From NCBI RefSeq assembly GCF_022045235.1, contig NW_027266275.1, forward strand, positions 17,236,001 to 17,300,000: a stretch of DNA of 64,000 bases, written 5' to 3'. The notes below the pieces were generated by a model. That model was not told the origin of the DNA. It searched no databases and saw only the letters and a program-made list of their open reading frames with translations. Made by a program: the position numbers and the translations under genes. This stretch comes from Haliotis cracherodii. Its lineage: Eukaryota. Numbering within the stretch: the stretch's first letter is position 1; each line of letters starts with the position of its first letter. This document shows, piece after piece, positions 23,697 to 43,783 of the stretch.

Positions 23697-24207
23697 GTGG
23701 CCTGAAATACTAGTCCCATCATAATAGACTTGCTATAGTAAGTTTCATATTAATAACATCAATTATCCTTTATTCGTGCCCAAATACACTGTACGCTATA
23801 CAATAACAAAATGCAGTATATTCTTTATGCTTATAGGAGATTGACAAAGTACGTTTTTTCATTAACAAAATCAAGAATGAACATCGCACATAATGTCAAA
23901 TCAATGACCATTATTTGACAAAATCCTGATTCCTAGTCAGTTAAACACGATACGGTTATGGCCTATCCAACAAGCGTGTAGAGAGCATGCCACTTCCCCA
24001 GATTATCCTCTGACTATTAAACAGAATATCATAGTGGGACCTCTGCAGTGCGGACACCCATATTGTCCTCAATAAATACAACTGTGTCAGACTGCCAATA
24101 CGTTGTCATGACTGTGGTTCGGAAAGTGAGGTTTCCGGTTTTATGAGACTTGTGATTTGCAAGGTAGTTGAGGGACATCTGGCAGGACAACATACGATGT
24201 TCCTGTT

Positions 24208-24273
24208 TCACGACACGTGTTTTCCAGTCTTACACCCGTGTTGGTAGTCCATCCTTCCACAGTTGTAGCATGT
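24208..24273 (-). CDS. RING/TRAF-ZnF gene, terminal exon (TCYNCGRMDYQHGCKTGKHVS*)
   Basis: Acceptor TTGCAG|ACA, phase 0. Completes the Cys/His motif begun in exon 2. AATAAA at 23769-23774 on the minus strand. Confidence 0.8.
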   Translation of the reverse strand, partial: TCYNCGRMDYQHGCKTGKHVS

Positions 24274-24318
24274 CTGCAATGGCAATTCATGTGTGTGCAA
24301 TGCGTACGCTAAGACTTA

Positions 24319-24615
24319 TGGCACTGGTGGCCCAGCCGCCTAAGGCACCGCAATTCGCTATGCAGAGTTGCGTTCCTTCGGCACGCCAGGAATCTATGAT
24401 TGTAGGTTCGAATCCAAGTTCGCCTCGATAATGTTTCTATGTTTTTCAGCACCATACCCGTGATCTAGGTTTCACCAAAGTAGTAAACGTCTGAGACCTG
24501 CATCACTTCGGGTTTTCCTCTCACATCAAGCTGTCACGTCGTGATATAACTGGAATACAGTTTCAAGCGTTAAACCCAACTCACTCACTCACTCACTCAC
24601 TCACTCACTCACTCA
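24319..24615 (+). mobile_element. tRNA-derived SINE, family B
   Basis: Homologous to the 15670 copy, with a long (ACTC)n tail. Confidence 0.85.
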
Positions 24616-24746
24616 CAGTCCACTCACAGTCATGTAGATGCATCCAGAGTAAAGAACTATCCATACCACATAATTTTAATTCGCCAAAAGTTAAAGAATG
24701 AATCACAATACAAGTTAAGATTATGATAACAAAACATATTACTTAC

Positions 24747-24749
24747 CCC
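24747..24749 (-). CDS. RING gene microexon 6 (GGG, Gly)
   Basis: caaatag|GGG|gtaagt. Confidence 0.65.
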
Positions 24750-24981
24750 CTATTTGTCCGCAGGTGGTCGAGATCATGAAAATAAATGAAGACATGCCAT
24801 CATTCCTTTTGCCATTTGAAAACAATAAAGCTGTAAGTTCTGTATTATCTGTATCGATGAATGTCCGTTAATAGAAATGATACAAATATGGGAACTGTTA
24901 TCTTATCAAGGACTCGTAAAAAGCTATAAATGTACGTAATACAATTTACTTTTATTATTATAATAATCAATCCATACTTAC

Positions 24982-24984
24982 ACC
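24982..24984 (-). CDS. RING gene microexon 5 (GGT, Gly)
   Basis: ttcgacag|GGT|gtaagt. Confidence 0.7.
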
Positions 24985-25279
24985 CTGTCGAACACAGTTG
25001 TAGGTAGAGCATGAAATACAAACAAGTACCAATTATTATTTGCCATGAAACATGTCACGAAGTGAAGGAACCGACCATATTCCCCCAGAAATGAATAATA
25101 TGACCCAAAAATACAAATTAAACGTTTCACGAAAAACACACATTAATTGGACGCCTGAATGCAATAATGTTCGTTGGTTGAAAGAAATGGCGAAAATTAA
25201 ACTTTTCCTAAATAGAAATGTCCAAAAGTTACCTCAAGTTACACACACACCCACAAAGAAGAGAAGAAATTATACTTAC

Positions 25280-25285
25280 AAAAAG
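25280..25285 (-). CDS. RING gene microexon 4 (CTTTTT, Leu-Phe)
   Basis: cttgatag|CTTTTT|gtaagt. Confidence 0.7.
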
Positions 25286-25399
25286 CTATCAAGATCGATC
25301 AATATGAAAAAGAAACAAAAATACATCTTATTCTAATTTGATTAGGCTGATTAGGTGAGGTGGAATTGCACTCATATAGCGACGCGACGCGACTAATGC

Positions 25400-25597
25400 C
25401 GCAGTTTAACATAAATACCCTACTCAGTATGCTCCGAGCCGACCAGTCCTTGTTTTACCCTTTTAACGCTGAGCGCCAGGCAAGGTAACAACAAGTACCA
25501 TCTTTTAACGTCTACTGGTATGACGCGGTCGGGGATCAAAAACCCGATCTTCCGCTCTCCGGGCAGACGCTCTATCCACTAGACCAGGGAGTCGGTC
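25400..25597 (-). mobile_element. tRNA-derived SINE, family D
   Basis: Head CTAGTGGATAGAGCG...TTGATCCCCG. Body shared with the 22335 copy. Confidence 0.75.
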
Positions 25598-25816
25598 GAT
25601 TGGTGTGATAGTAGAGAAGTACATGAACGCGTCAACTATAATACAACCTCATGTGCATGTCAAAATTGTGCAAACTTTCAACCTTCATTGTACACAAGAT
25701 TAAGATCGTTAACAATGAGATCTCATTGTTATCTCTTATCAAGGTTTTATGCATGTTATAACTCTTGTAACTTTGTAGTTTACCATTTTATTAATTCCCG
25801 AAATGTATACACTTAC

Positions 25817-25822
25817 GTCGAT
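25817..25822 (-). CDS. RING gene microexon 3 (ATCGAC, Ile-Asp)
   Basis: CTAAC branch point and pyrimidine tract, then gggacag|ATCGAC|gtaagt. Confidence 0.72.
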
Positions 25823-27387
25823 CTGTCCCATCCATATGAAAAAAAGGAAGAAAAAATATTTGTTAGTCTCTCATATGATTCTATATGTTTAGGTACACAT
25901 ATTTATGTGGCGTAAATATACAGATTAAATATGATATAACATATACTCACTAAATATAAATATATTCTTATAAAGTTTACGTATTTAGTAAATAGTTGTG
26001 TGCACGTAACATGAAATAGTAATATGTGAAAAGAAAAGGAATGATCTGCGAAAAATATTTAATTGAATTATTTAAAGATGATTTCATGTGTTATTAAGCA
26101 CATTAACACTTGTTAATAATATCATGTTACCATTAATCATTTGTTTTTAACTGAAATGAAAATTGAAATGGTAGCTCTTTTCTTATAACACAGCATACCT
26201 TATAAATTACATACACGTGACATTCACCACTACAGAACGAAAGTGACATTCACCATTACAATTAACATGAAGTAACTCTCATCTGTGCAATAGTGTCTGT
26301 CATAGGGAAACGAGCACTTACACATGTGCAGTAGTGTTGTTTATAGACATAATCACCATGACAACGGCAACCATGATTGTGTACACTTCATGCTGTTAGG
26401 AAAGTACATCTCAACATCACCATGGAAACGAACAGGCATGTACATGTAGTTTCGATAAATGGAGTGACAGATTGAAATTTATCCATCTTTAAGAAATGTA
26501 ATTAATTGTTTAAGGTGAAATAGTCTATTGCATCTGTCTTTCCAAGTAGGTGGAAGAATATTATAAATATACACCATTCAACGATTTCCATCGTATATCT
26601 CGGAATGTAAGAAAACATTGATACCAATAGTTCACAATTAGTATTACCTTATGGGGTCGCATTTGATTGTGATACTAAATATATACAAAACATGAAAAAT
26701 AATGTTAAAATACGTGAGGTTTCAAAAGATTCTGTTGAGACATGATAAAACAGACATTGACCAAGAAAACCATAAGTGGCACTGCGAAAAATATATCACA
26801 GGTAACGCTATTTACATATTTACATGTACACTCGTACATATCTTTTTCAGCACAGTGGCATGGTTTGACTAAGGCATGTGTGACATTAATAATAATTTAC
26901 AAAATAACTGATTAGATTTTATGCAGCTTTAATGATTAGCTACACCCCGACGCGAAACAGGCGTGTTTTTGTACCCAAGTGGAGAATCGAACCTGGATGC
27001 TAGGAGTGACAAGCGAATGTTTTAACCACTAGGCTACCCCGAAGCACACACGGACATTAAATAAAATACATTCTCATATATATAGACGTCGACATTACCT
27101 ATATATTAAGATCCGTTTCATGCAAGCCAGATGCCATACATACATGTCAGTGGCTGTACAGTAGATGATATATGCAGCAGTGAGCATAACCGAGTGCGAA
27201 GGAAGCTGGTGTACGTGTTTCAAAGGAGGTGTTCGAGGACCACAGAGATAATATTTTCGTCATGTAATGTAATGTTTATGTCTCATACGAGACATATAAT
27301 AGGAGGAGCAAACTGTGTGAAATAAGTCCCTTTGGATCATAATTTGGGATATATTTGTGGTCGTATGGTGATTCTTGCTGTAAAACT

Positions 27388-27623
27388 TGAGTGAGTGAGT
27401 TGGGTTTAACGCCGATTTTAACAGTATTCCAGTTATATCACGGCGTGTCAGTTTAATGAGGGAGGAAGCCCGAAGTGATGCAGGTCTCAGATGAAATCCA
27501 CGAGCTAGGGTATGGTGCTGACCGGGATTCGAACCCACAATCATAGGTTTCTGGCGTGCCCAAGGGACGCAACTCTGCACAGCGAATCGCGGCGCCTCAG
27601 ACGACTGGACCACCCGTGTCCCT
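27388..27623 (-). mobile_element. tRNA-derived SINE, family B
   Basis: Homologous to the 15670 and 24319 copies. Confidence 0.85.
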
Positions 27624-27886
27624 GTAATACTTGAGGTAGGGATGGGGGGAGGAGTTTTTAATTCAGATCTACATCTACAACTCAACATATATATCCGTTT
27701 TTGAAATGCAATCGTAATAATCATTAGGCTAACCCACCACTCAGTTTACCACAATGAACACAGATATAACAGGTTATTCATGTAGCCAGTTCCATACGCT
27801 TAACAAAATGTATGTCTCCTCGAATATCTCCTTCCACATGGGCGCACATCGTATCACACAAGAAGCACACATACACATATACTTAC

Positions 27887-27889
27887 AAT
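27887..27889 (-). CDS. RING gene microexon 2 (ATT, Ile)
   Basis: CTAAC branch point and T tract, then atccgcag|ATT|gtaagt. Confidence 0.72.
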
Positions 27890-28121
27890 CTGCGGATCAA
27901 ATGAAAAAACAAAGGCTATTAGTTAGAAAAATAAGTTTTTTTATGAACATACAGAATAGAGACTGATGTGATCAAAATGTTAACCCCCAAGTCTTTTGGG
28001 GTAGAATTTGAAAAATGAATATTTTACGATTCTTCGGTGGAAAAGCAAATATTCTGTTTATTTCGTAGAGGTGTTATAAAGTCATGTTAAATATTAATGT
28101 AAGTAGAAAGAGTATACTTAC

Positions 28122-28124
28122 TGG
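28122..28124 (-). CDS. RING gene microexon 1 (CCA, Pro)
   Basis: T-rich tract, then gccaacag|CCA|gtaagt. Confidence 0.7.
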
Positions 28125-28962
28125 CTGTTGGCGTTACATGTAATAAAAATAAAGAGTTTAAAGCGATTACGTTTAACAACTGCACCAGGTTACAATAAAA
28201 ACGACAAAAACACTTTCCATTTTCATATGAAATATGCTAAAAGGAGAGTCCATTTTTCGATGTTTCCGACTACTAGCATGTCATAAAGCATGTGTTTATG
28301 AATCACTATCCGATAGTGATGATACTAGGTGGTCAGGAACAGTTTAGCGTATCCTGTCCCACTAGTGGCACCCGTCAGTTTGACAAACACATGCAAAGGC
28401 AAGTTAATGTTTCACCTAAAAAAAACATAGGAACTTAGGGTACGAGTCAAAACAAAAAATTGCATCGGACATCATTTTCGTCACTGATGCGTCAAATTTG
28501 GAAATGTCCTCCACGTGTCTACCATAAAACAACAAACGCTTTGGGAAAAAAATGGTAAGTAAAACCATTATATCTCCTGATAATTATTTTAAATATAGCT
28601 ATTGGTCTGGTAAATACACAATGTCAGTGACACTGCAGTGAATGGTTCAGAATCGTTAGGATAAAGACTTAAGTCGTTACACTTAAATCATAATATATAC
28701 CATTCTACAGAGATACTCAGTGACGGTGACTGTCACTTTTACTTATTTAATTGATGAACTAATTTGTACTCAATACTTTTGCAATCACACACTTTTATAA
28801 ATGCATTTATGACCTGGTCCACATCCAGATGATATGTATCTCATAGGACCAAACTAATATACTCATGCTCATAATTATAGTCACCCCTATGCCGACGCGC
28901 ATATATCTATCTACGTGATGACAATAATTATGGGCATGAGATATAAGTAGTTGTAAACTTAT

Positions 28963-29335
28963 ATTATCATCCAAAACTGGCTCCCACAGGAGATATCGCT
29001 TGGGGGAGATCAAGCGATATCTACATTGTAGATATCGCTGCAGTTAAATTGCATCACAATGCTTTGCAGGCTATCGTGACGTCATTGTTACATGACGTCA
29101 CAATCAAATGACATCACTAATGGCTCTGCTACTGAAGCTGTAAGCAGTACTTTTTACGCTTAAGACACTGCGTATTACTACCTACAAACTGAAAAGTTGG
29201 AAGAATGATGTTGGATGATAAATAAAATCTCACCCTCGTGTCTTTTGATATCAAACATATCAACACTCGTTGATAAAAGTGGAAAAACTTTTTTTGATAT
29301 ATACGATATCAAAAGACATGTGGTGATATTCTCTA
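28963..29335. repeat. Dispersed repeat, copy 1 (homolog of 33794-34200, palindromic part internally deleted)
   Basis: TTATCATCCAAAACTGGCTCCCACA... is shared with the 33794 copy. Confidence 0.8.
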
Positions 29336-29673
29336 TTTATTAATATAAAACACGAACAAATAAGTGACTTGAGTAAAGTCATATTTTCAAAGTATAGAAA
29401 TAGCAATCTTTCGTAAATTGAGTAAAACTTCGAAATACCAAGATCTAAGTTTACCAATAGGGATGAATCAATAAAATATTCACAAACATGACAAGTTATT
29501 ATTCCTATTACAGGACGTTTTTACTGGAACTGGTAAAGGCGTCATCAATAAATTTCATGTTGTGATATAATTAAACACAACTCACAACTGATATTATTTT
29601 TTTACACTCACAGTGCATAAGCGGTGAGAGGATTAAAAGAAATTGTGAAGGTAGGTTTAGTAAAGACTCTCAC

Positions 29674-30136
29674 CCCTGCGTGGTAGGTGCATGCCATGCT
29701 ATGGTTGCCCGCTTCTCTGAATGGTTTCTTGCAATTCTTACACGTGAAGACATCCTGCCCTGCGTGTGACGGCCTAGGAGATTTGCCAAGACTAAGAACT
29801 AGAGACTGGTTCTCTGCAACTGAATCCTTTGACTGTGGAGAGCTGTCGGAGAACATGTCATCGCTGGTGTCGTCATTGTGTTTAGAACGTACACTGTCCA
29901 AGTAGCTTTGCTGCTTTGATCTGAAATGGCTCATGACCGCTTGTCGTTGATGTCGTTCAAGTTGAAAATGTTGACGTAGAACGTAGTCTCGGTGACGCCG
30001 GACCTCCAGGTTGGTTGATTTCGCTGCCCGCGCAACCTGTTGCCTCAGCTTCTTCTCCAGGCATCGCGTCTTGCTTTGGTGGGTGAAGAGGTCACAGTAC
30101 TGAACTCGGAACCCACAAGCCTCGCAGTCCACAAAT
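29674..30136 (-). CDS. RING/TRAF-ZnF gene, exon 2 (end of TRAF-type ZnF, coiled coil, Ser-rich linker, start of CHORD-like motif)
   Basis: Acceptor CTTCCTGCAG|A (phase 2), donor GGG|GTGAGA (phase 0). Ends CKNCKKPFREAGNHSMACTYHAG. Confidence 0.85.
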
Positions 30137-30715
30137 CTGCAGGAAGGGTAACTGTGGTTGAGATTTGTTCACTGAACTGAACAATTTAATGTCACACATT
30201 GGTGTGTATGTTTCTTTAAACCCATGATAAATATGCAATGTGTTCGAAGTTTTCACCCGGTGGGAATGGGTGGGCGGTGGTTTAGTAGTAGGGTAAGTGA
30301 GCACTATGGCTTTACGCCGCTTTTAGCAATAACCCAGCATTATATCTTTGGGTTAAGCAGTTCGGGGAGAACTAGGAGGCATGATGTTTGGCCCAAGAAA
30401 GTTCCATATTTCGTTGTGCAGAGTTATGTCTCTTCCAAGGTTTCGCTTGAAAGTTGGGTCGTGTTCCCAGGTTCGCCCTGTTTATGACCCTTGATCACAC
30501 CCGTGGTTGATGGTTTCATCAAAATGGTGAACGTGTACATACTGAGCATCTTTGTTTATTCCTCCCACAAAAAGCTGACTTGCGGTATATTAGTTGAATT
30601 TCTAGTCAAAGCAGAGTTAAACCAATCTCACTCACTTACTAAAATGTATGTGCGTGATGTCCTAAAGAAAATTGTTACAACATTATAACAATATCATTTC
30701 GTTCAAATATATATA

Positions 30716-30932: not shown

Positions 30933-31342
30933 CTGTGATAGCACTCCTCGGCATGAATACTCGCCTCGCACCTCTTCACAGTCTTACAACATCCAACGTT
31001 TTTGTAAGGACAAGAAACAGGAGCGTTAGGACACACATCAGCCACGTGGTCGGGAAGATCCGCTAGCTCGCAAACAATGCCACACCCATGGTTACACTTG
31101 ATTCTCAACCTCAACAGCTTCAGTTTTAGCTCCACCGATACCTCCGAGGACTCTGCGTTGAGCTTGGTTGAGCATTCCGGACAGTATCGAGACGTCCTGG
31201 TCTTGCTGCGCCTCCAGATGCACGACTGACAGAAGATGTGATGACAGGAGTTTGACACGGGGTTCACGAACACTTGGCTGCAGATGCTGCAGATGAGGTT
31301 CGGGTCTATTGTGCCAACAAATAAAGTCAGATCGAGACCCAT
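30933..31342 (-). CDS. RING finger (C3HC4) + TRAF-type zinc finger E3 ligase, RNF151/RNF41/PDZRN3-like, first coding exon
   Basis: MGLDLTLFVGTIDPNLICSIC...CHHIFCQSC...CPEC, followed by CNHGC...HVADVCPNAPVSCP...GC...HAEEC. Donor AG|GTACGT. The full model including microexons is 963 nt (320 aa). Confidence 0.9.
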
Positions 31343-36442: not shown

Positions 36443-39010
36443 TCGCTCACCCTACAACAGTATTGTGTGTGGCAATTAAGTTATCTGTACCTAGCTTTTC
36501 ATACCATCATTGAATAACTCATGATTCCGGCTGTATACGTGTATTTGATGTCAGCACAGTTTCAAGAAACTAATAGCTCAATTTTGTGGATAATCTCTCG
36601 TTTGAACTGCTGTAGATTGAGGACATTTTGTGTCGAGCTGTAGGAGCTTTGTCTGTGGAATGTAATTGGTTGACACCTGAAGAAATGTATAGCTTGGACC
36701 ATGTACGGGTTCGGCAGACATATACACACATGCACACATAGACTCTCATGCACGGACACAGCCCTGTCTCCTACGTATTACTGCTGTCCCAAATATCCAT
36801 GTGTCACTGAAAATGTTGGGGGGGGGGGGGGGGGGGGGGGGGTAATTTCTCAAATGTGTAGATCATTCCGAGTAACAGGTAATAATTGCGCCTGGATGTC
36901 CACACAAACAGTGTTTGGATAAGCATATGGACATTACAATACTGAATCCCCTCGTATTTCATACCACCGACGGATTCACTTAGACATGTCTTCCCTGTCT
37001 GCAAGCTAAGCCCCCCTGAGTTCAATGTTGACTGACGTGTTTGGGTTTCCCGGGACTGGAGCATCATGAGGTTGGTTGTGTGGCTTTTTGGTTGGTTGCG
37101 TGCTCAGCCTGTCGCGTGAGTGGAGTGAGTGAGTGAGAGTTGTTGGTTGGTCGGATGAGTGCGAGTGTGTGTATGTGTGCGAAAGGGACATCATTGGGGT
37201 TTAGCTTCACCTCTATAACTGGTGTGGACGATGTTCCCTCTACGCAGGGTGAATGAGTGTGTAAGTAAGTAAGTTGAGAAATACCAACGAGGTGCGAGGA
37301 ATTAAGAGTTATCCGCCCTCGATATTTTTCGTATAATCGTGATGTCATCAATTTGTGAGGTCGTCAACAGCATTCAGATGCGCTAAATGCACATGCGCAA
37401 ATATCAGAAAGTTATTACACCAGACACCAAAACAGTAACCCCATACGTGTCTTGGAGGGCCCTCTACACAAAGTGAGTGAGTGACTACGGTTTTATACTG
37501 TGGTCCCAAATGGGGAGTATCTGTTCTGCCACGATGCATGTATGCTATAATAGGCATTCCTGTAAAGACAATCCTGTGGTCGATCGCGGGAGCAACGACA
37601 TACATGTACGTCTACGCGATATAAAGACACACGCCCAGCTGGAACACTGATATATATATGGTTTTCCTTAGTGGTCATCCATTGTTGGCAATTAACCACC
37701 AGTTACAAGAAATCGTCAACAACGGATTATCAAGAGAACGAAATGAAGTAAATAAGAACTTGTACAATAATTACCTTTATCACATGAGAGGCAGACAACG
37801 TATAACAAAATATATTTACGAGTATATGGAACACGAGCTGTTATATATGACATTTACGAGCAAATCCTTCTCTTTATCGGAGAGAGGTGATTATACTATT
37901 CAGTATTAAAAACAGTACTGTTCAAACATATGTCTTATCTAATCAACGTTTTCATTAACACATACATATACAATATTCACAAACATCACTATGAGATGTA
38001 CAACTATGTCAAAGCAAATCCTGAAATTGTTACAAAATACATTCATGCATACATAAAATCAAATGGTACACAGGAATGTATGTTTAAACAATTCATTTTG
38101 CAAGACCATACTCTTGCTGGAGAAACAGTTGTAAGGTAAAATGGGATATTAATACAGGATATGTTAACCACATTTAAAATATATTCCATTAGTTTAATCA
38201 TGGGGATTTCCTAATATACTGATATAAAATGCAAACACGAGAACATTTTATCCATTTACAATTCGTCTATACATACATGCAATGTATCAACTTACCCGCT
38301 TTACAAACGTCCCAACACGAAGCATGAATCCTAAAATGTCACCTTTTGCCTGACACTGACAACGATCCGCCCTTCACCGTCACCCATATTTATGTTCCTT
38401 GTGCGGGGAGCGTTAACACGACAATCAATCAAACCCTTATAATAACAGGGGGAAATCTGTGGGACACTCTCACCTAGCGACCCACCACGGCCCTATTGAA
38501 GCGTCCCTGGTTACCAACAGGGTGACAGTCAATAGTTTGGATAGTTTCTTTTCTTGTCTCCGTGACTTCTTACACACTTTGTTTATTGATTTAACGCCTC
38601 TTTTTAACGTCAGACATTCTCATTTTCCTATATCTTACAGATCATAGCTTGTTGTTGAAAGCTATAAACACAAAACGTACTCGTTTATGAGTATTCAGTA
38701 GCTTTAACTAAAGCTCACAATCACATTTTCACGACTGATCAACATTAAGTACGCGAACATATAGATATTTACAGATTTCACGCCAGATCTGTAAACTATA
38801 AATATCAACAGTAAATCCTATTTCTTAAGAATCGTGGTACGTATTTACATTTTGATTGATATTGTACTATCAGGGGACACTCAAACGATAAGGGATAGTC
38901 ATTGGACACGTCAGGAGACAAGCCAGAGGGCAAAGCAGATGACAAGGCACTGGGCATTTCAGATGCTACTTCAGAGGACAAGGCACAATGCACTTAGGAA
39001 TACAAGGTAG

Positions 39011-39551
39011 AGGACACCTCAAAAGACAGGGCAGGGACACCTCAAAAGACAAGGCAGAGATCACCTCAAAAGACAAGGTAGGAACACCTCAAAAGACAAG
39101 GCAGGGACACCTCATACGACAAGGCAGGGACACCTCAAAAGACAAGGCAGGGACACCTCAAACGACAAGGCAGGAACACCTCAAAAGACAAGGCAGAGAC
39201 ACCTCAAACGACAAGGCAGAGAACACCTCAAAAGACAAGGCAGAGGACACCTCAAAAGACAAGGCAGGGACACCTCATACGACAAGGCAGGGACACCTCA
39301 AAAGACAAGGCAGGGACACCTCAAACGACAAGGCAGAGACACCTCAAAAGACAAGGCAGAGGACACCTCAAAAGACAAGGCAGGGACACCTCATACGACA
39401 AGGCAGGGACACCTCAAAAGACAAGGCAGGGACATCTCATACGACAAGGCAGGAACACCTCAAAAGACAAGGCAGGGACACCTCATACGACAAGGCAGGG
39501 ACACCTCAAAAGACAAGGCAGAGGACACCTCAAACGACAAGGCAGGGACAC
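39011..39551. repeat. Minisatellite, ~23-bp unit (GACACCTCAAAAGACAAGGCAGG)
   Basis: Direct tandem repeats visible in the sequence. Confidence 0.93.
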
Positions 39552-39839
39552 TGTTAATGTTGCAAATGCCATCTTTGACATAAAGGTACACAATTCTGTT
39601 GTAAAGTCAAAGTCGGGACCGAGTCCATGGCGCTATGTATTTGTATCTCGAATTCGAGATAAGCGATCAAATCAATATGAAGTTATATAGTGAGGCGATC
39701 GGGACCGGAGACTAGGTTCGATTTATCGGTACATTCGAGATAACGGGGTCCGCCTTTACACTCAAATGACTTACACCAAATAATACGACATAAGTAGACG
39801 ATACCAATTCCTATTCAAAAGAAGCACTATAAATCAGCA

Positions 39840-40024
39840 NNNNNNNNNNNNNNNNNNNNNNNNNNNNNNNNNNNNNNNNNNNNNNNNNNNNNNNNNNNNN
39901 NNNNNNNNNNNNNNNNNNNNNNNNNNNNNNNNNNNNNNNNNNNNNNNNNNNNNNNNNNNNNNNNNNNNNNNNNNNNNNNNNNNNNNNNNNNNNNNNNNNN
40001 NNNNNNNNNNNNNNNNNNNNNNNN
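39840..40024. other. Assembly gap
   Basis: Run of N. Confidence 1.
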
Positions 40025-40166
40025 GCATTAATCTTGGACGCGACGTTAAACCACATTTCACATGACCTCACCTTACCTCACCTTACCTCACCTCTAAACT
40101 ATACAAACTAACTCTAATTAGTGGCGATACAAACATCTCAGTTCTCAGAGAATCTCCCCTCGTTAT

Positions 40167-42859: not shown

Positions 42860-43783
42860 AGTCACAGCAGGGCCAAGATAATGTGATACCACTACCTTTG
42901 TTGTAAGTTGTATTACTCATCATGACCCAGTCATATCAGCACCTACACATGGTGATACCACTACCTTTGTTGTAAGTTGTATTATTCATCATGACCCAGT
43001 CATATCAGCACCTAGATATGGTGATACCACTACCTTTGTTGTAAGTTGTATTACTCATCGTGACCCAGTCATATCAGCACCTAGACATGGTGATACCACT
43101 ACCTTTGTTGTAAGTTGTATTACTCATCGTGACCCAGTCATATCAGCACCTAGATAATGTGATACCACTACCTTTGTTGTAAGTTGTATTACCCATCGTG
43201 ACCCAGTCATATCAGCACCTAGATAATGTGATACCACTACCTTCGTTGTAAGTTGTATTACTCATCGTGACCCAGTCATATCAGCACCTAGATATGGTGA
43301 TACCACTACCTTTGTTGTAAGTGGTATTACTCATCGTGACCCAGTCATATCAGCACCTAGACATGGTGATACCACTACCTTTGTTGTAAGTTGTATTACT
43401 CATCGTGACCCAGTCATATCAGCACCTAGATAATGTGATACCACTACCTTCGTTGTAAGTTGTATTACTCATCGTGACCCAGTCATATCAGCACCTAGAT
43501 ATGGTGATACCACTACCTTTGTTGTAAGTTGTATTACTCATCGTGACCCAGTCATATCAGCACCTAGACATGGTGATACCACTACCTTTGTTGTAAGTTG
43601 TATTACTCATCGTGACCCAGTCATATCAGCACCTAGATAATCTGATACCACTACCTTTGTTGTAAGTTGTATTACTCATCGTGACCCAGTCATATCAGCA
43701 CCTAGATATGGTGATACCACTACCTTTGTTGTAAGTTGTATTACTCATCGTGACCCAGTCATATCAGCACCTAGATAATGTCA
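42860..43783. repeat. Minisatellite, 69-bp unit, intronic in GPCR copy 1
   Basis: Units start at 43021 and 43090; about 13 copies. Confidence 0.95.

Follow-up and report, generated by a model that had tools for sequence, protein, structure and literature searches.

Six consecutive exons of three or six nucleotides very probably encode eight residues of a zinc module in an abalone RING/TRAF ligase

The stretch of DNA analysed in this study, 64,000 nucleotides (nt) of the abalone Haliotis cracherodii (contig NW_027266275.1, positions 17,236,001 to 17,300,000, hereafter the window), carries on its minus strand the gene of a RING and TRAF-zinc-finger E3 ligase made up of exon 1, exon 2, six microexons (ME1 to ME6) and a terminal exon (Table 1). 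Eight residues of the zinc module of this ligase, PIIDLFGG, are very probably supplied by the six exons of 3-6 nt, the introns flanking which would be removed serially. The evidence strongly supports the six sites as coding exons and fits their constitutive inclusion. A wider proposition is rather doubtful and is offered tentatively, namely that the intron cluster predates the protostome-deuterostome split, that it has been kept as a slow-intron, post-transcriptional gate on the full-length ligase, and that the U-tract, UUUCAU, AG-free spacer and YAG form a dedicated new class of 3' splice site. If it were true, each retained intron would yield a truncated protein without half of the zinc module.

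Table 1. Exons and upstream elements of the ligase gene in the window, and the corresponding exons on metagenome contig L003
Feature	Located on	Position	Strand	Sequence and remarks
Exon 1	window	30933..31342	-	ATG at 31342; donor AG/GTACGT; phase 2 end; codes for RING finger and TRAF-type zinc finger
Exon 2	window	29674..30136	-	463 nt; second TRAF-type finger, coiled-coil-like stretch, first half of C-terminal zinc module
TTACAT element	window	28138..28143	-	one mismatch to TTTCAT; 19 nt upstream of ME1; U-rich tract before, AG-free spacer after
ME1	window	28122..28124	-	CCA, Pro (invariant P of the motif); acceptor CAG, donor GTAAGTAT
TTTCAT element	window	27901..27906	-	17 nt upstream of ME2
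ME2	window	27887..27889	-	ATT, Ile; acceptor CAG, donor GTAAGTAT
TTTCAT element	window	25836..25841	-	19 nt upstream of ME3
ME3	window	25817..25822	-	ATCGAC, Ile-Asp; acceptor CAG, donor GTAAGTGT
TTTCAT element	window	25304..25309	-	24 nt upstream of ME4
ME4	window	25280..25285	-	CTTTTT, Leu-Phe (invariant F); acceptor TAG, donor GTAAGTAT
TTTCAT element	window	25011..25016	-	32 nt upstream of ME5
ME5	window	24982..24984	-	GGT, Gly (invariant); acceptor CAG, donor GTAAGTAT; placed in the window from sequence only
TTTCAT element	window	24776..24781	-	32 nt upstream of ME6
ME6	window	24747..24749	-	GGG, Gly (invariant); acceptor TAG, donor GTAAGTAA
Terminal exon, coding part	window	24208..24273	-	behind ...ccattgcag; reads TCYNCGRMDYQHGCKTGKHVS then stop; 3' untranslated region extends below 24208
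Microexon CCG	L003	3066-3068
Microexon ATG	L003	3451-3453
Exon ATACAAGTCTTT	L003	3951-3962
Microexon GGG	L003	4457-4459
Microexon GGT	L003	5206-5208

The gene and its codon-sized exons

Exon 1 matched the Pfam families zf-RING_UBOX (PF13445, 2.7e-09, 37.3 bits against a cut-off of 25.2) and zf-TRAF (PF02176, 3.3e-08, 34.6 bits against a cut-off of 27), and the best PDB profile matches were the RING-zinc-finger regions of TRAF5 and TRAF6. The gene product thus shows a RING finger followed by TRAF-type zinc finger(s), the architecture of the RING/TRAF E3 ligases, members of which are named RNF151-like, PDZRN3-like or TRAF5-like by NCBI. Exon 2 is identical over 154 of 154 amino acids to the H. 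cracherodii protein XP_071107706.1 and ends ...C-T-Y-H-A-G, that is ...CACGCAGGG/GTGAGA at 29674 (donor GGG/GTGAGA). The terminal exon provides the last four zinc ligands and aligns with the pattern x-C-x2-C-G-x-x-D-x3-G-C-x2-G-x-H of the homologues. No paralogue was returned when the abalone's own genome was searched with exon 2, just the locus itself.

The six sites between exon 2 and the terminal exon had been proposed in an earlier note on this DNA, and each was found on the minus strand at the position given in Table 1, with a YAG before it and a GTAAGT after it. Their lengths, in order of reading, are 3, 3, 6, 6, 3 and 3 nt, all of them frame-preserving, and the chain reads P-I-ID-LF-G-G. 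Recounting gave the same figures as that note, seven minus-strand GTAAGT in the interval and a nearest upstream AG at exactly 3 or 6 nt in six of the seven. The computed lengths of the seven introns from exon 2 to the terminal exon (1549, 232, 2064, 531, 295, 232 and 473 nt) also agree with the phase-0 introns of 232-2064 nt described there; all seven are in phase 0, and they are packed within 24 bases of a coding sequence of 963 nt.

Only one further YAG-N6-GTAAGT occurs in the window, CAG-AAAATG-GTAAGT at 5365-5379 on the plus strand, which may represent a short exon with a start codon at its end or may have arisen by chance.

Transcript evidence

Transcript contigs matching the window at 90% or better were taken from four public runs (X1, X2, X4 and X5) of four organisms. 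Two of the junctions were seen directly. Record 21 of X4 joins 29674 to 28124 (exon 2 to ME1) and beyond ME1 reads on into unspliced intron, and record 24 of X5 joins 24747 to 24273 (ME6 to the terminal exon), being unspliced upstream through ME5 and ME4. The list of joints was dominated by repeat-derived ones, and the remaining evidence on the microexons was taken from the coordinates of contig pieces.

Pieces stop exactly at the end of exon 2 (29674) in X1, X2 and X4, and they break at 27889 (ME2) in X1 record 5 and X2 record 12, the latter with 27 unplaced letters past the break, the length of CCA together with 24 nt of exon 2, as expected at k=31. At ME3, X1 record 3 begins precisely at 25822, and X1 record 4 begins at 25817 with 24 unplaced letters, for which 6+3+3 nt of microexons and 12 nt of the terminal exon would account. 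X2 record 9 spans 24747-25285, from ME6 to ME4, with unplaced letters at both of its ends, and X1 record 2 likewise ends at 24747 (ME6). The unplaced overhangs at microexon edges amount to 23-27 letters, which matches a k=31 contig crossing the neighbouring microexons into a larger exon. The terminal exon is covered by contigs at 24150-24273. Pieces of exon 2 stop at 30139, consistent with splicing to exon 1, and they reach this position because exon 1 and the intron end in the same three bases.

Contigs bearing introns were found at about one third to two thirds of the depth of the exons in X1 and X2, and the part-spliced combinations match neither a single 5'-to-3' nor a single 3'-to-5' order of removal. 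The variant forms seen in the contigs retain introns and end in stops, and none of them is an in-frame skip. For ME5, support comes from the invariant F-G-G of the homologues and from oyster proteins that end ...VFG followed by VS.

Conservation of the eight residues

A search with exon 2 against 1.84 billion representative proteins yielded 37 homologues; the exons were searched individually, and the eight-residue reading was matched to the homologues by inspection and regular expressions. The 37 proteins keep the architecture of RING, TRAF finger and coiled coil together with a C-terminal Cys/His module. In every complete homologue exactly eight residues stand between C-x-[WYF]-H-x-G and x-C-x2-C-G, and they follow the motif P-[IVM]-x-x-[LV]-F-G-G. 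Examples are PIVKVFGG in oysters, PIVNLFGG in Biomphalaria, PMLELFGG in the brachiopod Lingula, PVVELFGG in three species of the amphioxus Branchiostoma and PVVDVFGG in Montipora corals; two transcript-derived proteins (Logan) read PMVQVFGG, closest to venerid-clam proteins, and PIVPLFGG. An alignment of 11 sequences showed the P, F, G and G to be invariant, along with the eight zinc ligands and an N, a D and a G. The abalone PIIDLFGG is thus exactly what the family requires at this place. That the joined residues belong to exons, as the earlier note had suggested, is thus borne out twice, by the contig breaks at their edges and by the fit to the motif of the homologues.

The same note had taken the eight residues for a spacer between zinc ligands. 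The notion of a loose spacer was not upheld; judged from sequence comparison, the residues probably form the conserved core of a two-zinc module that is weakly CHORD-like. A single member of the module family searched against the PDB had 2yrt (CHORDC1) as its sole match (E 0.18), while a five-sequence profile matched 2xcm (CHORD-II of RAR1) with E 0.023 and 2yrt with E 0.068 across the whole module, and these two CHORD structures were the only PDB matches seen to span it. A Pfam scan at E up to 10 gave no CHORD (PF04968) match for the module. The CHORD domain and the abalone module would have in common the pattern C-x2-C...N-x4-C-x-[WY]-H-x-G-P...F...C...G-C-x2-G-x-H; the module of the abalone family differs from CHORD in its shorter middle and in having C-x2-C where CHORD has a W-S-C-C stretch. 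An AlphaFold 2 model of the Biomphalaria homologue, built from a 13-row alignment, was unusable over the zinc module, with a predicted local distance difference test score of 40-60.

At the start of the second CxxC, the coral transcript P0074 reads ...VFGG-CQTCG, lacking the Met that follows FGG in P0066 and P0033. This one-codon difference could reflect an alternative acceptor or an assembly variant.

Predicted proteins that run into introns

A GTAAGT in phase 0 translates as 'VS', so that the exon end can be located wherever a predicted protein reads on into an intron. The H. cracherodii model XP_071107706.1 continues G-P-VSILFLLTLIFNMTL, which is ME1 and then the translated intron of the window. 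The expectation of the earlier note that standard gene predictors would miss the chain was confirmed, as every Haliotis RefSeq model examined stops after running into an intron. The models of H. cracherodii, H. rufescens (X1) and H. rubra (X1) read G-P and then enter the intron after ME1, those of H. rubra (X2) and H. rufescens (X2) read G-P-I and then enter the intron after ME2, and that of H. asinina is truncated likewise. Six Haliotis RefSeq entries of five species (P0114, P0090, P0113, P0001, P0059 and P0058) end in translated intron with a 'VS...' tail, and the same tail was found in entries from bivalves, a nemertean and sea urchins (P0048, P0076, P0031, P0093, P0029, P0100-P0103 and P0024). 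A database search for a fully spliced Haliotis protein with the true C-terminus found none. In the models of Potamilus (P0050) and Montipora capricornis (P0062) the terminal exon is frame-shifted, their tails YMFQVWKTRLPARMHDG... and ...KLVEDWITLKGV being shifted readings of ...CFKCGKLDYQPGC... and ...QTCGRLDNLEGC... Among the predicted proteins examined, which come from molluscs, nemerteans, sea urchins and corals, most have the 3' end of the gene truncated or mis-modelled, and a VS tail directly after a conserved motif offers a cheap flag for missed microexons.

Three other predicted proteins, from Sinanodonta (KAL3876433, P0002), Nucella (P0094) and Diadema (XP_072168459, P0099), skip all eight residues, and isoforms X1 and X3 of Lytechinus lack the P. 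Such records would be expected if the six were independent cassette exons, combinatorial skipping of which tuned the linker from 0 to 8 residues in up to 64 isoforms, and since all six lengths are multiples of three any subset would indeed stay in frame. This explanation is nevertheless unlikely. The Sinanodonta and Nucella proteins were rejected as isoforms because they are hypothetical proteins from genome annotation and not sequenced transcripts, whereas all of the transcript-derived complete proteins (Logan/ENA) have the eight residues, with P, F, G and G invariant, and the variants actually observed are the retentions with stops described above. No in-frame partial form was seen and four of the coded residues do not vary, so that the 2^6 linker isoforms once envisaged for this locus find no support.

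The chain in other animals

The same chain is present on the metagenome contig L003, the exon translation of which is about 70% identical to venerid-clam proteins. Its exon ends ...C-R-W-H-I-G/GTGAGT and is followed by a chain of 3, 3, 12, 3 and 3 nt (Table 1), which reads P-M-IQVF-G-G, the equivalents of ME3 and ME4 being fused; after the GGT there is a terminal exon that starts TCFACGRLDYQPGC and reads TCFACGRLDYQPGCASGFHRV before the stop. The intron sequence of L003 is unrelated to that of the abalone. A contig related to L003, L005, holds the CCG and ATG microexons.

The 12-nt exon (IQVF) of L003, set against two 6-nt exons in the abalone (window 25822-25280), amounts to one intron gain or loss within molluscs.

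Exon ends in further species are marked by the VS tails. These were found after H-x-G in many species; after P in Solemya, Saccostrea, Ostrea, Mercenaria, the nemertean Tubulanus and Lytechinus variegatus (X4); after P-I in Haliotis rubra (X2) and H. rufescens (X2); after ...L-F in S. purpuratus and L. variegatus (X1 and X3); and after ...F-G in Crassostrea gigas. In the coral-like genomic contigs L008 and L009, by comparison, ...acag/CCG GTT GTG GAT GTG TTT GGG GGG ATG TGT stands in one terminal exon, and the intron after H-x-G is the only one of the seven common to cnidarians. We infer that the chain is old, shared with bivalves and absent from corals. The exon ends common to molluscs, a nemertean and echinoderms suggest that it predates the protostome-deuterostome split, and its history may have been one of six gains in bilaterians or of one concerted 3' loss in corals. 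Seven phase-0 introns per 24 nt in bilaterians against one in corals is an extreme intron density, which bears on models of intron gain and concerted loss.

Zero-nucleotide recursive splice sites are known from Drosophila (bioRxiv 10.1101/006163), and cryptic microexons repressed by the exon junction complex (EJC) from human cells (PMC6224609). Like the abalone sites, they combine a strong acceptor with a strong 5' splice site directly behind it or within a few nucleotides, usable only after upstream splicing, and part-spliced intermediates play a central part in all of them. The strong acceptor adjoining a perfect GTAAGT resembles the Drosophila ratchet points in particular, and part-spliced intermediates are abundant in the abalone, which would suit six ratchet points of recursive splicing with incidental bases between AG and GT and no functional contribution to the protein. 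It is, however, very improbable that the sites are of this kind. The interval measures just 5.4 kb, each spacer has a length of 3 or 6 nt and none of 0 nt, and 3 or 6 coding nucleotides are added where Drosophila ratchet points leave nothing in the messenger RNA; moreover, the motif length and four residues are conserved from corals to amphioxus, and in corals the eight residues sit within an ordinary exon. Scarcely credible at all is an origin of the AG...GTAAGT copies by chance or from a repeat such as a dispersed element, with no role in splicing, for although the introns contain several repeats of very high depth that resemble short interspersed nuclear elements (SINEs), none of the sites falls in a high-depth bin, contig breaks coincide with them, a homologous chain stands in the clam-like locus with unrelated introns, and only about 0.09 YAG-N3/N6-GTAAGT sites are expected in the 5.4-kb single-strand interval against the six observed (dinucleotide-preserving shuffles of the window gave 1.0 N3 and 1.2 N6 matches per 64 kb on both strands).

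Splice signals and a possible mechanism

All six microexons that very probably supply PIIDLFGG have a GTAAGT donor, which in four of the six is GTAAGTAT. Donors of the GTAAGTAT type can form up to eight intron-side pairs with the textbook 5' end of U1. The data support the view that such perfectly pairing donors make up for exon-side bases that are fixed by coding.

The acceptors share an order of elements: a U-rich tract, TT[T/A]CAT, an AG-free spacer of 11-26 nt without pyrimidine bias, and the YAG. Counted within -45..-5 of the acceptor, TTTCAT was found at five of the six abalone microexons, with one variant at the sixth, compared with 2.0% of random YAG in the window, and at all six acceptors of 3-nt microexons on L003 and L005, compared with 3.0% of random YAG there. 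Taken together, 11 of the 12 acceptors of 3- or 6-nt microexons on the abalone locus, L003 and L005 have TTTCAT 14-43 nt upstream, whereas the four ordinary acceptors compared (those of exon 2, the two terminal exons and the 12-nt exon) all lack it. In the 1.18-Gb assembly the strict pattern TTTCAT-N6-30-YAG-NNN-GTAAGTA had 67 matches against 140 for a reversed control, so there is no general genome-wide enrichment, and the chain locus is accordingly exceptional and not an instance of a genome-wide habit; three of the 67 fall in one 3.2-kb stretch of this locus, the sole cluster in the assembly.

Upstream of the 12-nt exon of L003 the acceptor is an ordinary one without TTTCAT, having TTAAC/TTGAC-like sites about 30 nt upstream and then a T-rich tract.

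A codon-sized exon would be too small for the complexes of the 3' and the 5' splice site together; as a 3-nt exon cannot carry both at once, the introns on its two sides would be spliced out in succession, through intron definition. The displaced U-tract and TTTCAT may keep U2 and U2AF off the exon and free the bases around it for U1, and the AG would then be picked as the first one downstream of the U-tract/TTTCAT unit. TTTCAT itself is probably either a branch site, given that UUCAU fits yUnAy, or a binding site for a factor. Sequential splicing is a necessity for the 3-nt exon 4d of bee ELAV (PMC8553928). The part-spliced abalone contigs, together with the detained introns reported for plant microexons (PMC8831610), would fit such serial removal. 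The EJC of human cells represses 5' splice sites that follow a newly formed junction at a distance of up to about 15 nt (PMC6224609), whereas the abalone must use such sites six times running, and their reuse would imply either a downstream-first order at each exon or weak repression by the EJC.

Several points weigh against the interpretation as a chain of constitutive coding exons, or against parts of it. The runs are labelled 'RNA?', and the case for RNA rests on the spliced joints; the edges of the pieces and the lengths of their overhangs are the basis for the junctions besides 29674/28124 and 24747/24273. A large share of the transcripts is incompletely spliced, all six microexons were found joined in no individual abalone contig or database protein, and the edges of ME5 are absent as contig breaks among the rows listed. 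The exon ends in oysters, the nemertean and sea urchins are read from the tails of predicted proteins, and Lingula and amphioxus are represented here by protein sequence alone. The relation to CHORD is weak (E 0.02-0.07, no Pfam match) and should be taken as a lead, not as membership. Finally, at some sites no more than about 10-13 nt would separate the A of TTTCAT from the exon, a short distance for a branch point, and the assignment as branch site is uncertain.

Comparison with known short exons

The splice sites and the microexons at this locus are ordinary in themselves; it is their density, their conservation and the dedicated acceptor layout that are new. Micro-exon genes (MEGs) of Schistosoma are lineage-specific, fast-evolving and varied by exon skipping. 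In one account they consist of long runs of symmetric 3-81 bp microexons with long introns between them and encode secreted proteins (bioRxiv 10.1101/2023.06.21.545858). Whereas MEGs, according to the same account, are built of short exons, in the abalone these contribute only 24 nt of the 963-nt coding sequence, in an intracellular RING/TRAF ligase with deeply conserved residues. The RING and zf-TRAF domains and the presence of homologues from corals to amphioxus also set the gene apart from the schistosome type.

The SRRM3/4-dependent microexons of neural genes offer a second comparison. They have a UGC-containing enhancer just upstream of the acceptor. UGC (TGC) was found in the upstream spacer of only two of the six abalone microexons, ME5 and ME6; the element common to the abalone acceptors is TTTCAT, not UGC, and the gene is not known as a neural one. 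Neural microexons of this kind have an extended region from the branch point to the 3' splice site (bioRxiv 10.64898/2026.01.16.699960), and both they and the abalone microexons have 3' splice-site signals displaced upstream.

Single 3-nt microexons have been described in animals, in cytohesin-1 (PMC6314551) and as exon 4d of honeybee ELAVL2 (PMC8553928), and RPS24 has microexons of 3, 18 and 22 bp (PMC12207440). Like those of the abalone, the single 3-nt animal exons place one codon in frame between AG and GT and are too small for exon definition. They are isolated and mostly alternative, however, whereas the abalone has six in a row, apparently constitutive, which code for invariant residues and recur across phyla.

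In plants, according to PMC8831610, microexons of at most 15 nt have been conserved over hundreds of millions of years and are widely missed by annotation, and the 1-nt VPS55 microexons are flanked by strong GTRAGT donors, with flanking introns that tend to be detained. An adjacent pair of 5 and 12 nt is also given there, and at most two adjacent microexons are described in the text consulted, in contrast with the run of six in an animal gene reported here (PMC8831610).

To our knowledge, no run of codon-sized constitutive exons inside a conserved domain has been reported in the literature searched, in which no account of the gene structure of this RING/TRAF family was found either. The locus provides a compact natural system in which to study how the spliceosome recognises exons below the size that exon definition needs, and it can show whether repression by the EJC is evaded at splice sites that lie 3 nt from a newly made junction and what role TTTCAT plays.

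Other features of the window

High-depth repeats lie in the introns of the ligase gene at 24350-24549, 25350-25600, 26950-27150 and 27350-27750, with contig depths that sum to as much as 2-3 x 10^5 in each of the four runs, and they resemble abundant SINE-like elements. 'Opposite strands' joints connect 24468 with 27521 and point to two inverted copies from a single element family. No tRNA-like gene was detected by ARAGORN in these intronic repeats.

Outside the gene, 13 GTAAGT at an exact spacing of 69 nt, each with near-identical upstream sequence, make up a 69-nt tandem repeat array at 42903-43731 on the plus strand. An open reading frame of 189 amino acids at 38988-39557 on the plus strand consists of repeated KDKAGTPQTTRQGHLKRQGRDTS-like units and adjoins a run of N at about 39830-40060, the window containing 353 N in total. 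Unlike the remaining window, positions 6001-10000 have a guanine-cytosine (GC) skew of -0.44 to -0.62 and a GC content raised to 0.46-0.48.

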